From the NCBI RefSeq assembly GCF_006345805.1, contig NC_043002.1:55552001-55616000 (forward strand): a stretch of DNA of 64,000 bases, given 5' to 3'. Under the pieces are notes generated by a model that was not told the origin of the DNA, did not search any database, and was given only the letters and a program-made list of their open reading frames with translations. How positions within the stretch are numbered: the first letter of the stretch is position 1; each line of letters starts with the position of its first letter. Source of the DNA: Octopus sinensis (Eukaryota). Of this stretch, positions 3,516 to 52,234 are shown one piece after another. The position numbers and the translations under genes are program-made.

Positions 3516-6500
3516 AGCTAGGTTAGAAACTTGTTCTTTCTATATTGGCAAGAAATCTTGAAATAGACTGAATAATAATATACATAGATACGAGTAAAGC
3601 TGTGCGTCTCTGACATGGCTGCACTCAGTGAAACACCACAGCAAGAAATGAGAACGAGACACGCAGCTCTCGTATTTCTGATCGCATCAAGACTATAATG
3701 TCACGGCTTGATTGGAACGCTATGTTTCACAGGCACTACGCTCTAACCATGGCCACCTCTGAGCAGAAAAAGGATGACTTTTCCTACTAACTTTCTGATG
3801 TCTTGAAGGAGACATTTTCTTATAGAAAATATGAGATTCTCCTAAAAGATTATTCAATAACAGTGATCATTATTGATCCAATATTGACAAAAATATTGTG
3901 GTATTTCGATGAGCTTCGATGAGGAATGCACGAGTCCCGGATATTTTCTCCTGCTGCATTTTCTCTAGTGAGGGCCGTAGGACATAATCTCGTCATAACA
4001 TTGGAAGAACGAAAAAGAGAAGAAGGTGTTTCTAGGTTTGTATCATCTTCGTATTTTCCTCTCAGTTGTTTTTATTCAAAAGAGGAACGATTCCCTCTGG
4101 CCCAGGTTCGATACAAGAATTGAAAGTTTCCAACTTTGGCTATGGGCCAGCAATTTCGGGGTGTTTAATGGATTTCGACGACCCCATTACGTAAATGGTA
4201 CTTATTTTATGAAGACGGGAAGAAAAAAATGTCCTACTGGTGAGATACATTGTAATATAATGTATATAAGATATATAATAAAGATAAAGAAATGACTGTA
4301 ATATGAAATATAAAAAGAAATTATTCATAAAATAAATCACATCTATTGATATCAAGAAATAATGGAACAAGTAGTAAATATAATATGGATGTCTGTAACG
4401 AAGTTGTAATCCACTCATTGAACAAAATCAAAAACACAAACAACAGAATATAAAATAAAATATTAACACTTTAATGTTTCCATACAAAAATATAATTCTC
4501 ATTTATATAATAAATAATAGAAATGATGTCGGCGTATATGTGTGTGTGTGTGTGAGTATGCAGGGAAGTCTTGCTAGTATAATGCATAGGAATATGGTGT
4601 ATATATTATAACGAAGATTAAAAATATAGGAAATGGAATCGGAAAATAAAAAAATTAAAAATGAATTAAATAACGTAGCTATAGTTATGTATATCTGAAT
4701 ATATATATAGATAAATATAGGTATGTATATATGAAAAATATATATAGATTGATCCGTCACAGCCCCATTGGTTAATCCCAACAACATCGATGTAACACGA
4801 TATTAAATAGAAATATTGATTTCATAAAGGAGAAATATATATTGTTTACGATTATAAACGTGATAAGAAAATATAAGATAAAAATTAATGGAAATATTGG
4901 TACTTAACGATTAATATAATCGTCGATATGATTATTAAGTGGTGAAGCTAAAACACTTCTACATAATTGAAACGATACACTTGTATCTGATTTTTCTCTA
5001 ACTGAGATTGGTTACAGAAGTATTATAACAGGAATCAATTACATAAAGGATTCTAGAGTATTTTGAATGTGGTTTATATTTTCATGAAGTGTATGGAGTG
5101 TAATTATGGTAAACCATCGCTGCTTGGTTATTGGCACATCGTCCGGTAGCAAAAGACTGTCATCCACTTCGACATTTTGTTTGATGTTTGAAAATATCTG
5201 AAATATATGAAAAGAACATTGTAAAGTAGGGATAAGCATTAATTGATATTAATACACAGACACACACGAAGACTCACTCACACACACACACATACACACA
5301 CACACACACACACACACATGTAATGAAACCGAATATATTTATCCATAGGAAGCCCTACTTGGAGGAGTTCTAGACATGGTCAATGTAGCTTTTTCCCCCT
5401 ACATTCAATACTATACAGATATTTATACGAGCATATTATATATCACATTTACCAATACTAACAATATACAAACACATCTAATATATGAATTTACTACTAA
5501 TAATAATATAGACATAAATGCAAAAACACGTATATATTACGGATAACATTTTGATAGAGTAAGTTCAAAATTATTCTAATTGTAGTAATTCTTTCAAATA
5601 ATTAGACATTCTATGCATTGTTGTCTACATTATAAAAATGAGGAAAGTGTGCAGAACGTAAGCTGTTTATCGTCTGCACGAAGTATTTTACGACAGAAAT
5701 CTTAGAAACCCTGAAGAGATGTAATTTGTAATTTTTTGGTAGTCATGAAATACAAGAATACTTTGAAAGAATGCTTCGAAATGAGTATATATATAATTTC
5801 TCTAAATCAACTGACCATATCTTCCCGGATCTATTCTATGAGATATATATTTAATATATTCCGATAAACATGAGGATATTTTGGTGCTGTTTTATTGAAC
5901 AAGGCATTTATCTACATTCATTTTTTGTGAGGAAATGAAAGAGAAATCGCGTGAATCTTCATCTAGGAAAATATATTACGATAATAATACTTACCGGTGA
6001 ATCCAGAAAAAGTATCGTATCAACCAGGTAAGAAAGTGTTTGTTTTAAGTAACAATAAAATATGGCATCAGATGTGGGAGTGAGTTTAGAACAGGCAGCG
6101 GGATAATAACATTTTGTCTGTATACGTTTGGCAGGAGCACACAGCTGGTCATATTCTTTTTCCGTCTGGTCTTTCAACACAGTAACATATTGACTGAGGG
6201 TTGCAGACATATTGGATAGAGCAATCTGTAATAAGAATTGTGAGAAGCTTGAATTTTATTCGACACTGATTGAGATTTCTTATAAAATATAGAATCGAGT
6301 TTAGATATAAAGTGTATAAATATTTCAAGAAAATATGTTTGATAATATGTCCATACCTTGACAAATCTGTCTGCGCGATGGTGATATTGTCTTGAATGTA
6401 GAGCTGAGGGAATGTAAGTTCCGTCTGGTTGAGTAGCATATGAATAAAGTGAGGACAGGATACCGCAGAAGCCATTGGAGTGTTGTGGCACTGTAGAAAA

Positions 6501-49276: not shown

Positions 49277-52234
49277 ATGAATAACTGTAAGTATGAAGTC
49301 GGTACTATATTGATACATACATATTTATATTTAAAAACATATATACATACATACGTACATATGTGTGTGTGTGTGTGTGTGTGTGTGTTGTGTGTGTGTG
49401 TGTGTATGTGTTGTGTTTTATCTCTTACTTGTTTTTGTCACTAGGCTGAGGCCATTCTGTGGCACCACATTGAGAATTTTTAGTTGAATGTACCAACTCG
49501 AGGACTTATCTGTGAATGCCTGGTGCTTATTCTCTAGGTCACTGAAGTGGGATGGACAATGACACACATGCACACACATATATGCGTATATATGTCTAGC
49601 TATTTATCTATCTGTGCATCTATTTATCTATCTATATAAGCGGTTTTAAATAGCCTCGTCTTTCCTGTGATATATAAGATATCGCATGTTTCCCTAAATT
49701 GAATATTCCTATTTTTATCTCAACTGAATACAACCATTGCAGTGCAGTACATTGTGTTTATTTCTATTATTTAATTATCGCACTCAATTACTATTGCAGA
49801 ACAAAACAACAAAACACTTAAAACGTGGCCTTCTTCCACTCAGCCAAATATCTATTCACTTCTCTTTAACACACTACACAATAACTTATGGTTTATATTT
49901 AGTGGAACTATGTTAAATATTTGTGAATATCGTGTATTGAGTTCCAAAATGTTCAGCTCATTGTTTACGACACGTGAAAAACTAACAGCGACTTATTGAG
50001 TCATTTCTTTTTAATAATAACAATTCCTTCAATGTCTCCGTTTCCTTCTAAATGTTCCTTAATGGTACTTTTTTCTATTTTCCCGTAGACTGGCAATATA
50101 TATTGGTCCTGTGTATCTCAGTCTGGACTTCATTCATCCAGGGAGCATCGATAAAACCTACAGCGATACCAATAAGTAACATAAAAGCTCAACTGGATAC
50201 TGCTCGCAAGGCCTCAGTAGCTGTGAACACTACTTTGCACTATTTTGTAAGTTTACATTTATTTGTTCATATATTATTGTTATTATTATTGTTATTCTTG
50301 ATATTGTTATCATCATCATCATCATCATCATCATTATTACTACTTCTTATACCACTCCAATAATATATTACTTAACATACTACCCACATAATAATTAATA
50401 AAGTTCTCATAAAGATCAATATTTGAAACGACTAGTTCAGTGTAAACGGACTTCTACTCCGTTGTTTTCTTATCCTATCTGTCCAAATCTCAGACGCCTA
50501 ATATGTCACGTGTTTTTCTACAGTGCCACAACACTCAATTAGCATCTGCGGTAAGCTGTCCTCACTTTATTCATATGCTGCTCAACCAGACGGGACTTAC
50601 ATTCCCTCAGCTCTCCATTCAAGACAATATCACCATCGCGCAGACAGATTTAGTCAAGGTATGGACATATTATCAAACATTTTTTTTAAAATGTTTATAC
50701 ACTTTCTATCTAAACTCGATTCTATATTTTATAAGAAATCTCAATCAGTGTCGAATAAAATTCATGCTTCTCACAATTCTTTGTTACAGATTGCTCTATC
50801 CAATATGTCTGCAACCCTCAGGAAATATGTTACTGTGTTGGAGAATCAGACGGAAAAAGAATATGACCAGCTGTGTGCCCCTGCCAAACGTATACAGACA
50901 AAATGTTATTATCCCGCTGCCTGTTCTAAACTCACTCCCATATCTGATGCCATATTTTATTGTTACTTAAAACAAACACTTTCTTACTTGGTTGATACGA
51001 TACTTTTTCTGGATTCACCGGTAAGTATTATTATCGTAATATATTTTTCTAGATGAATATTCACGCGATTTCTCTTTTATTTCCTCACGTAAAATGAATG
51101 TAGATAAATGCCCTATTCAATATGATGGCACTAAACAATTCTCATGTTTATCGAAATATTTTAGATATTACTCGTAGAAAAGAAACTGTTATCAAAGATC
51201 AATGGGTCTATTCTTTAGATTCCTTTGGAGAAATATAAAATCATTTCAAAGCAATCTTGCGTTTTATAGTTACCATGAGATTACAACTTCTCTTTAGGGT
51301 TTTTCTCCTATGATTTCTGTCGTAAAATATTTCGTGCAGACGATAATCAGGTTACGCCATCCGCTATTTCCTTATTTATATGGTGCTATGAAGTTGACAA
51401 CAATGCGTAGAATTGTAATCAATGTAGAATGTCTAATTATTTCAAGTAATTACTACAATTAGAATCATTTTTAACCGTTCTAATTTGACAATATAATTTA
51501 CTCTATCTAAATGTTATATCTAATATATATATATATGTGTTTATATAATTATTATTAGTAATAAGTTTCATATATAACGTGTGTGTACATTATTAATATT
51601 AGGAAATGTGATACACAGTGCGTGTCTGTAAATGTCTTTATAGTATTGAATCTAGGGTGAAATAGTTTCATTTGCCATGTTTGTATCTCTTCCGTGTAGG
51701 ATTTCATATGTATGTATGTATGTATGTATGTATGTATGTATGTATGTATGTATGTATGTATGTATGCATGTATGTATGTATACGTACACACACACACACA
51801 CACACATACACACATATATAGATACATTTAGCTTTATACTGTGTGGACTGAAAGCCTCGTTGGCAAAATTCGTTACGTGTGCGTGTGTGTGTGTGTGTGT
51901 GTGTGTGTGTGTGTGTGGTGTGTGTGTGTGTGTGTGTGTGTGTGTGTGTGTGTCTGTGTGTGTCTGTGTCTGTGTGACTGTGTGTCTGTGACTGTGTATC
52001 TGTGTGTGCCTGTATGTATGTTAATATCAAATAATATTTATTCCTGATTTACAATAATCTTTTCATATATTTCAGATATTTTCAAACATCAAACAAAATG
52101 TCGAAGTGGATGACAGTCTTTTGCTACCGGACGATGTGCCAATAACCAAGCAGCGATGGTTTACCATAATTACACTCCATGCACTTCATGAAAATATAAA
52201 CCACATTCAAAATACTCTAGAATCCTTTATGTAA
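49277..52234 (+). CDS. Copy D: intact five-exon gene, 240-aa secreted cytokine-like protein; exons 49277-49286, 50089-50246, 50494-50658, 50790-51020, 52076-52234
   Basis: Exon lengths are identical to B (10/158/165/231/159), introns are GT-AG and the spliced frame is open. 20 amino-acid differences from B counted by eye (about 92% identity). The apparent frameshift in the ORF track lies inside intron 3 (131 nt). Confidence 0.85.

Follow-up and report, generated by a model that had tools for sequence, protein, structure and literature searches.

To our knowledge, Drosophila Upd1-3, the secreted and glycosylated ligands of Domeless, are the only well-established helical-cytokine ligands of a gp130-like receptor in protostomes. 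A 2026 survey counts only insect Upd and a shrimp lectin as IL-6-like ligands outside vertebrates and leaves open the activator in molluscs, where an IL6R/Domeless-like receptor, JAK and STAT are present and no IL-6-like ligand was found (PMC13203501). The only helical-cytokine claim for a mollusc that we found in the literature searched concerns the oyster protein CgIFNLP, which is secreted and reportedly resembles a helical cytokine in three dimensions and acts with a receptor on JAK/STAT-related genes (PMC9756803); the same literature held no earlier description of class-I helical cytokines from molluscs or cephalopods. Here we analyze a 64-kilobase (kb) stretch of the Octopus sinensis genome (64,000 nucleotides [nt]; assembly GCF_006345805.1, contig NC_043002.1, positions 55,552,001 to 55,616,000 of the forward strand; hereafter "the window", in whose own numbering all positions are given) that carries four copies, A to D, of a gene for a secreted protein. 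This protein belongs to a real, undescribed cephalopod family that, as judged from a structure model, probably has a helical-cytokine fold, and for which we infer a cytokine function. We give a probability of roughly 0.55 to the reading that the window captures part of a tandem array of TATA-box genes that is specific to cephalopods and encodes a secreted four-helix ligand acting through class-I receptors and JAK/STAT. A secreted helical cytokine-like ligand is of a known kind; in the sources searched we found no description of this sequence family, of its cysteine framework, or of such a family in a lophotrochozoan.

Gene copies and encoded protein

A first-pass annotation of this DNA had taken positions 5039-52234 for a four-copy family of secreted proteins resembling class-I long-chain four-helix cytokines. 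The five peptide segments that it quoted were found at four places in the window, two per strand, and tblastn across the 64 kb returned no fifth copy; the range given is bounded by the stop codons of copies A (5039) and D (52234). The claim of four copies thus stands as a count, with the restriction that only B and D are intact, A and C being frameshifted. Gene models assembled with canonical GT-AG introns gave five exons per copy, and the mini-exon ATGAATAACT|GTAAGT is conserved upstream of all four.

Copy B (11061 to 14253, + strand) illustrates the layout. Exon 1 (11061-11070) consists of the ATG plus 7 nt and is followed by a phase-1 intron within the signal peptide, its splice to exon 2 yielding MNNY-WKY. 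Exon 2 (12321-12478; 158 nt, residues 4-56, with AG/GT borders) encodes the remaining signal peptide and helix A; exon 3 (12778-12912; 135 nt, residues 57-101) encodes the A-B loop and, within it, C57 and C68, the sequons N77 and N91, and a pair of mini-helices; exon 4 (13045-13275; 231 nt, residues 102-178) encodes helix B, a four-Cys B-C loop (C130, C140, C146, C159), and helix C; and exon 5 (14095-14253; 159 nt including the stop, residues 179-230) encodes the C-D loop and helix D with the conserved R205-W206-F207. Copy D (49277 to 52234, + strand) is built in the same way from exons at 49277-49286, 50089-50246, 50524-50658, 50790-51020, and 52076-52234 (with the stop), and both copies have unbroken 693-nt reading frames and canonical splice sites.

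The two copies on the - strand are damaged. In copy A (7898 to 5039; exons 7898-7889, 6948-6791, 6490-6357, 6225-5995, and 5197-5039), exon 3 has lost 1 nt near 6362, which leaves it 134 nt long and disrupts the frame; with every exon read in its own frame, the copy still encodes all six cysteines. In copy C (42247 to 29929; exons 42247-42238, 37747-37590, 31544-31410, 31277-31047, and 30086-29929), exon 5 lacks 1 nt near 30058, the substitutions C57R and C68Y remove two conserved cysteines, and repeats and a retroelement have swollen introns 1 and 2 to 4.5 and 6.0 kb, respectively; this copy is probably a pseudogene. Neither deletion sits within a long homopolymer run. The frameshifts of A and C may be assembly errors instead of real inactivation; unless they are, the two copies would have been inactivated recently. 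The closest relative of copy C, the O. sinensis protein P0003, is intact.

Exons are 90-100% identical between copies, and pairwise ratios of nonsynonymous to synonymous substitution rates (dN/dS) among the copies are 0.28-0.47. Because the short introns 2 and 3 match the exons in conservation between copies, the copies are of recent origin, and their similarity to one another says little about constraint, for which the comparison across species and with paralogues described below is the stronger argument. The exon identity, the dN/dS values, and the presence of orthologues and paralogues in three Octopus species and in Argonauta nevertheless put a gene family here far beyond chance.

Each of the precursors encoded by copies B and D is 230 amino acids long (92% identical to one another), not 240 as had been proposed, and two RefSeq models of O. 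sinensis, LOC118763923 and LOC118763924, likewise have exactly 230 residues and are collinear with, and 90% identical to, copy B. Where six N-x-S/T sequons had been claimed, we count five in spliced B and D: N50 (NTT), N77 (NQT), N91 (NIT), N106 (NMS), and N120 (NQT). The six conserved cysteines of the mature chain (C57, C68, C130, C140, C146, and C159, with an extra C58 in copy B) are all present in A, B, and D, as the annotation had it, provided that A is read exon by exon. By inspection, the N-terminus consists of MNNYWK, a 14-residue hydrophobic core, and QG|AS, which would leave a mature chain of 208 amino acids, within the ~160-210 residues that accompany a signal peptide in class-I cytokines; there is no other hydrophobic segment along the precursor. 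The proposed signal peptide also fits the relatives, since the N-terminus is hydrophobic in all full-length family members, and the structure model of P0003, in which residues 3-21 form a low-confidence helix and residues 22-27 are disordered.

Predicted fold, exon architecture, and relatives

The structure prediction and Foldseek search that the annotation had proposed as a check were carried out on P0003, an O. sinensis orthologue 90% identical to copy B. The AlphaFold2 model, made from a six-sequence alignment, has a predicted local distance difference test score (pLDDT) of 80.4, with the five models ranging over 72-80, and a predicted template-modelling score (pTM) of 0.77. Helix A (32-59) is followed by mini-helices at 61-66 and 68-78 and an extended segment, helix B (97-129) by a B-C loop of 19-25 residues that contains C130, C140, and C146, and helix C (155-175) by a 25-residue C-D loop and helix D (201-229). 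The four helices coincide with the four amphipathic segments picked out earlier from the letters alone. An up-up-down-down bundle requires long A-B and C-D connections and a shorter link from B to C, as are seen here, and the long connections (about 37 residues for A-B and about 25 for C-D) are kept in every full-length member, which fits the requirement for crossover loops. In this prediction from six sequences, then, four helices run up-up-down-down with crossover loops and an A-B mini-helix.

When the model was compared with 350,542 PDB chains by Foldseek, ranks 1-30 were all occupied by long-chain class-I cytokines and hormones (G-CSF, LIF, CLCF1, IL-6, IL-27p28, prolactin, and IL-12p35), with OSM, IL-11, CNTF, and GH further down the list. 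The best match was G-CSF (target-normalised template-modelling score [TM] 0.77-0.80, root-mean-square deviation 2.9-5.5 Å, ~200 aligned columns, probability 1.00), and the first unrelated protein came at rank 31 with a TM of 0.23. A viral structure library served as a specificity control: only two gammaherpesvirus proteins reached a probability >= 0.7 (target-normalised TM 0.54-0.57), one of them HHV-8 ORF K2, which we take to be viral IL-6, and a viral IL-10 homologue was matched weakly. No confident non-bundle fold was obtained. We regard the assignment to the long-chain helical-cytokine fold, as modelled, as likely to be correct. The fold test thus favors the earlier reading as a helical cytokine, which by contrast finds no echo in sequence or profile similarity or in the IL-6 signature and has a single model behind it.

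The exon architecture can be compared with vertebrate cytokine genes without reference to the model. The coding exons measure 10, 158, 135, 231, and 159 nt with intron phases 1-0-0-0, and the first intron lies 10 nt past the ATG, inside the signal peptide. On the model, the signal peptide and helix A fall to exons 1 and 2, the A-B loop to exon 3, helix B through helix C to exon 4, and the C-D loop with helix D to exon 5. The human IL6 and GH1 genes have intron phases 1-0-0-0, and the first coding exon of GH1 is 10 nt long. IL-6 genes have an exon layout like that of the octopus family (PMC13081863), the first intron of IL-11 lies 7 bp after the start codon (PMC3271213), and GH-1 has five exons, the third of which encodes the entire loop between helices 1 and 2 (PMC3014602). 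This parallel is independent of the structure prediction and is the best hint of descent over convergence; five exons and phase-0 introns are common generally, so it falls short of proof.

Relatives of the four copies were sought in an exhaustive HMMER profile hidden Markov model search over 1.84 billion representative proteins, which gave 22 matches: 19 family members and three saposin-repeat proteins. Six of the 19 come from public assemblies without a taxon, and the named rest are all octopodiform (Octopus vulgaris, O. sinensis, O. bimaculoides, and Argonauta hians). A word-indexed search with a wider alignment returned fewer matches than the preceding search of its kind and no new named taxa. 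P0026, a diverged member, is encoded by an unbroken open reading frame (ORF) of 214 codons, and the 1.46-kb contig that holds it, assembled from public reads, has the look of a transcript. Copy D matches part of an O. vulgaris model at 97% identity, and copy C an O. sinensis protein at 95%; the Argonauta proteins are full-length and 43-53% identical; and paralogues at 20-40% identity (LOC106876457, LOC115212847, LOC118763732, and LOC106873702 in O. bimaculoides/O. sinensis) share chromosomes, for example O. bimaculoides CM046606.1 at 10.43 and 12.82 Mb. Argonauta orthologues and distant paralogues still have a signal peptide, the same succession of helices, and all six cysteines. Family-wide, the six cysteines, E125, A133, P143, Y158, and L161 are invariant or nearly so, the best-conserved segments are the B-C loop and helix C in exon 4, and nearly all members have the signature C-x9-C-x-[YF]-P-x2-C-x11-13-C.

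All relatives are called "uncharacterized" or "hypothetical" in the databases, and the RefSeq locus names are not mentioned in the literature searched. The family was thus rightly described as unrecognized, being without a match in Pfam, among PDB sequences, or to known profiles, and these searches likewise returned no enzyme, toxin, or structural family. The description as a "lineage-expanded invertebrate" family holds insofar as the family is wider than the four copies; "invertebrate" overstates a range that, among named taxa, covers Octopodiformes.

Some of the database models are evidently composite. The O. vulgaris models P0001, P0002, P0005, and P0006 are chimeras that join exons 3-4 of two or three neighboring copies, with read-through of intron 3 or a foreign N-terminus and without the signal-peptide exons; the array in the O. 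vulgaris assembly comprises at least ~7 copy-equivalents. In Argonauta, P0008 and P0009 are identical from helix B through the B-C loop into the first part of helix C and differ at both ends, and P0017 is only distantly similar in that region, with a different, longer N-terminus and a truncated C-terminus. The pattern suggests either annotation mis-joining of tandem copies or exon swapping between neighbors.

The three saposin-repeat proteins (P0024, P0028, and P0029) reached whole-protein E-values from 1e-5 down to 2.6e-12 in the exhaustive search. The motif A-x-N-x-T-x3-[FY]-C-x3-P-x6-C-x2-F, located within family residues 37-97, is also seen in saposin B-type repeats, in their glycosylated C3-C4 segment. 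Saposin homology was considered and rejected: each repeat contributes 5-8 bits, the best single-domain E-value is ~1.7e5, and the whole-protein values are low because 6-11 near-identical repeats are summed. Of the saposin domain itself (~80 residues, six cysteines paired C1-C6, C2-C5, and C3-C4), only the C3-C4 segment is matched, and the likeness is probably convergent.

Putative promoters, array history, and surrounding DNA

The 300 nt upstream of the ATG show 82% column identity across the four copies, with TATATA present unchanged in all of them at a distance of 87-110 nt from the ATG. In copy B, the putative core promoter (10942-10980, + strand) comprises a kB-like GGATTTTCC at 10942-10950 and TATATAT at 10974-10980, 87 nt before the ATG; in copy D (49140-49178, + strand), GGATTTTCC lies at 49140-49148 and the TATA box at 49172-49178; and copy A (8041-8002, - strand) has the full kB consensus GGGATTTTCC at 8041-8032 and its TATA box at 8008-8002. 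In each of A, B, and D, the kB-like element precedes the TATA box by exactly 32 nt. Copy C has a TATA box at 42348-42354 (- strand) and an 18-nt gap in the promoter alignment in place of the kB-like element. The kB-like 9-mer occurs five times in the window, where 0.5 is expected.

The 3' flanks are 80-92% identical between copies. The putative 3' untranslated region of copy B (14254-14839, + strand) extends to an AATAAA 581 nt after the stop and contains five ATTTA motifs; the same layout is found in A and C, the AATAAA lying ~565-580 nt after the stop in the three copies. ATTTA occurs 4-8 times within the 700 nt that follow each stop, where the background for the window is 1.95 +/- 1.8. Unstable, inducible mRNA is usual for inflammatory mediators. 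Together, the kB-like element and the ATTTA-rich 3' flank hint at transcripts that may be inducible and short-lived.

Copies A and B, like C and D, form head-to-head pairs. A and B are the arms of an inverted duplication (4321-7171 versus 14988-12096, at 87%), and their promoters are mirrored (7879-8415 versus 11080-10567, at 90%). As C and D repeat the arrangement of A and B, the array grew by duplication of a divergent gene pair.

The window has a G+C content of 35.5% and is rich in microsatellites. Between B and C lies a degraded non-long-terminal-repeat retrotransposon (25255-28200, - strand; G+C 0.44-0.47), whose ORF at 25816-26241 matches Pfam RVT_1 with an E-value of 1.2e-15 and is flanked by fragmented ORFs. 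Inside intron 2 of copy C, a 431-residue ORF (32192-33487, + strand) resembles zf-RVT weakly, at an E-value of 5e-4 that does not pass the Pfam cut-off, and probably represents a retroelement tail; insertion of that element, together with flanking poly-Ile/Tyr simple repeats, would have swollen the intron from ~300 nt to 6 kb. A dispersed repeat of ~740 nt occurs in three copies of ~92% identity at 9097-9835 (between A and B), 19786-20529, and 1-309, each with the kB-like decamer GGGATTTCCC, and these account for 3 of the 7 consensus matches in the window. Long microsatellites at 11640-11910, 12540-12590, 38180-38725, and 44070-44540, namely (AT)n/(ACAT)n in intron 1 and (ATC)n in intron 2 of copy B and (CTAT-like)n and (AT)n elsewhere, give rise to spurious long "ORFs" of poly-Ile, Tyr, or Ser.

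Alternative readings and comparison with known systems

Under the reading that we favor, a signal peptide of ~22 residues would be removed from the 230-residue precursor, and the ~208-residue mature chain could carry up to five N-glycans and three disulfides, to go by its sequence. The chain would fold, according to one structure prediction, as an up-up-down-down long-chain four-helix bundle, in which helix A leads through a long crossover with mini-helices and a C57-C68 staple to helix B and the four-Cys B-C loop, and helix C through a second long crossover to helix D. The secreted protein would then cross-link class-I cytokine receptors of the Domeless/gp130/IL6R-like kind and turn on JAK/STAT. 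An aromatic residue marks site III of IL-6-type cytokines, and by analogy R205-W206-F207, conserved where helix D starts, would be a candidate receptor contact.

Several observations weigh against this reading. The fold rests on one model from a six-sequence alignment, and its Foldseek E-values are 0.02-1, none reaching 0.001. The model of the paralogue P0011 (37-41% identical, nine-sequence alignment) has a pLDDT of 43.5 and a pTM of 0.32: helices and loops have an order and lengths like those of P0003, with the helices unpacked. Its Foldseek list, with TM values of 0.15-0.25, is noise, and we therefore count the P0011 model neither for nor against the fold. Named members are confined to Octopodiformes; we know of no counterpart of the four-Cys B-C loop in vertebrate cytokines; and the promoter and 3'-flank features come from paralogues, which are not independent, in an AT-rich genome. 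Pfam at E <= 10 gave no cytokine family for B, D, or any of 16 members, neither the protein (phmmer) nor the family profile (hmmsearch) matched a PDB sequence, and hhalign of the family profile with human G-CSF and IL-6 gave a probability of 0.1%. The IL-6/G-CSF/MGF signature, C-x(9)-C-x(6)-G-L-x(2)-[FY]-x(3)-L (PMC5716431), was found in 0 of 36 sequences by a regular-expression scan; C-x9-C is present as C130-C140, yet in the B-C loop and followed by YYPAAC-SK. Since the sequence marks of the IL-6/G-CSF family, Pfam PF00489 and the PROSITE signature, were looked for and are absent, we do not place the octopus family within it.

Shared ancestry could nevertheless underlie the likeness. If the genes are true homologues of the vertebrate IL-6/G-CSF/GH superfamily and encode endogenous ligands of the cephalopod Domeless/gp130-like receptor, the exon-to-helix layout, the phases 1-0-0-0, and the fold would be signs of it. 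We hold this only tentatively, as a possibility on the doubtful side. If it is true, long-chain helical cytokines predate the protostome-deuterostome split and go back to the bilaterian ancestor, and the "missing ligand" of lophotrochozoan JAK/STAT signalling has been identified.

Alternatively, the cytokine fold could be real and do another job. The family would then be a fast-duplicating secreted ligand with a role other than immunity or growth control, whether in reproduction or gamete recognition, as a pheromone or neurohormone, or in a secretion directed at other animals, and would not act on the animal's own Domeless/gp130-JAK/STAT pathway. The fold evidence suits such co-option just as well, and lineage-restricted, paralogue-rich arrays with frequent pseudogenes are typical of reproductive and pheromone families. 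A precedent is the plethodontid receptivity factor, a vertebrate protein derived from cardiotrophin-like genes, to which we know of no sequence relationship of the octopus family. It is an IL-6-related, multi-paralogue, lineage-restricted courtship pheromone of salamanders (PMC8904931), and the octopus array is likewise lineage-restricted and rich in paralogues; a co-opted octopus pheromone or secretion would be a second independent case. We consider co-option unlikely, in view of dN/dS values that are below 0.5 rather than above 1, of a cysteine framework and helix-D motif that Octopus, Argonauta, and distant paralogues have all kept, and of a kB-like element and ATTTA-rich 3' flank that suit an inducible mediator better.

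It is also conceivable that the bundle is an artefact of a shallow alignment and that the protein is some other secreted helical glycoprotein, for instance one that binds lipids or small ligands or belongs to matrix or mucus. The collapsed P0011 model, the modest Foldseek E-values, the lack of sequence or profile similarity to cytokines, and the resemblance of a ~40-residue motif round N50-C57-C68 to the glycosylated C3-C4 region of saposins would all fit this view. It fits less easily with the agreement of the five P0003 models (pLDDT 72-80, pTM 0.77), with Foldseek matches specific to one fold class among all the chains searched, with long A-B and C-D connections kept as crossover loops demand, and with an exon-to-helix mapping that mirrors GH and IL-6, and the saposin resemblance dissolves into repeats of 5-8 bits each, its whole-protein E-values arising only from the sum of 6-11 of them; we find it rather improbable. 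That the array is altogether non-functional, made of decaying copies of a dead gene or of annotation artefacts, would accord with the frameshifts in two of the four copies, with short introns as conserved as the exons (so that conservation between paralogues is by itself no proof of constraint), and with the chimeric O. vulgaris models, and is nonetheless far-fetched given that B and D are intact, that dN/dS is below 0.5, that the TATA promoter is conserved, and that Argonauta orthologues (43-53%) and paralogues (20-40%) keep six cysteines, signal peptide, and helix layout.

We return to the preferred reading, a secreted four-helix ligand, and to its place among described proteins. Saposin-like repeats are, like the octopus protein, helical and disulfide-stapled and have a local motif in common with it, whereas the octopus protein lacks their six-Cys pattern (C-x2-C ... 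C-x5-C at the ends) and is 2.5 times longer, and no saposin structure appeared among the Foldseek PDB matches of the P0003 model. GH and prolactin were also matched by Foldseek, and GH-1 has five exons and a third exon that, like octopus exon 3, encodes the whole loop between helices 1 and 2 (PMC3014602); their target-normalised TM values of 0.46-0.51 are weaker than those of G-CSF or LIF, there is no sequence similarity, and the disulfide pattern is different. CgIFNLP, the oyster protein, is described as a class-II interferon-like molecule and comes from a bivalve, whereas the octopus model matches class-I long-chain cytokines, and it was not found by the family profile. With Upd1-3, the octopus family would share the functional role proposed here; no relationship is detectable by profile search, in which no insect protein, Upd1-3 included, was returned from the 1.84 billion proteins.

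The nearest counterparts are G-CSF, IL-6, and LIF, long-chain class-I helical cytokines of the Pfam families IL6, LIF_OSM, and CNTF. Like them, the octopus protein is, to judge by its sequence, a secreted glycoprotein of ~200 amino acids; its predicted structure, four long helices with a mini-helix in the long A-B loop and a long C-D loop, aligns with that of G-CSF (TM 0.77-0.80); and both have a disulfide where helix A passes into the A-B loop, a predicted one in the octopus chain. The aromatic residue at the start of octopus helix D presumably occupies the "site III" position of IL-6-type cytokines. Unlike G-CSF, IL-6, and LIF, the octopus family has no detectable sequence or profile similarity to that group and lacks its signature, and it has a longer B-C loop with four conserved cysteines in the pattern C-x9-C-x-[YF]-P-x2-C-x11-13-C. 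At the least, the comparison supplies a structural hypothesis for several "uncharacterized" RefSeq loci and makes the chimeric O. vulgaris models correctable; beyond that, the octopus family is a defined, clonable candidate ligand for mollusc JAK/STAT, so that the question of what activates the pathway in molluscs, as Upd does in insects, becomes directly testable.

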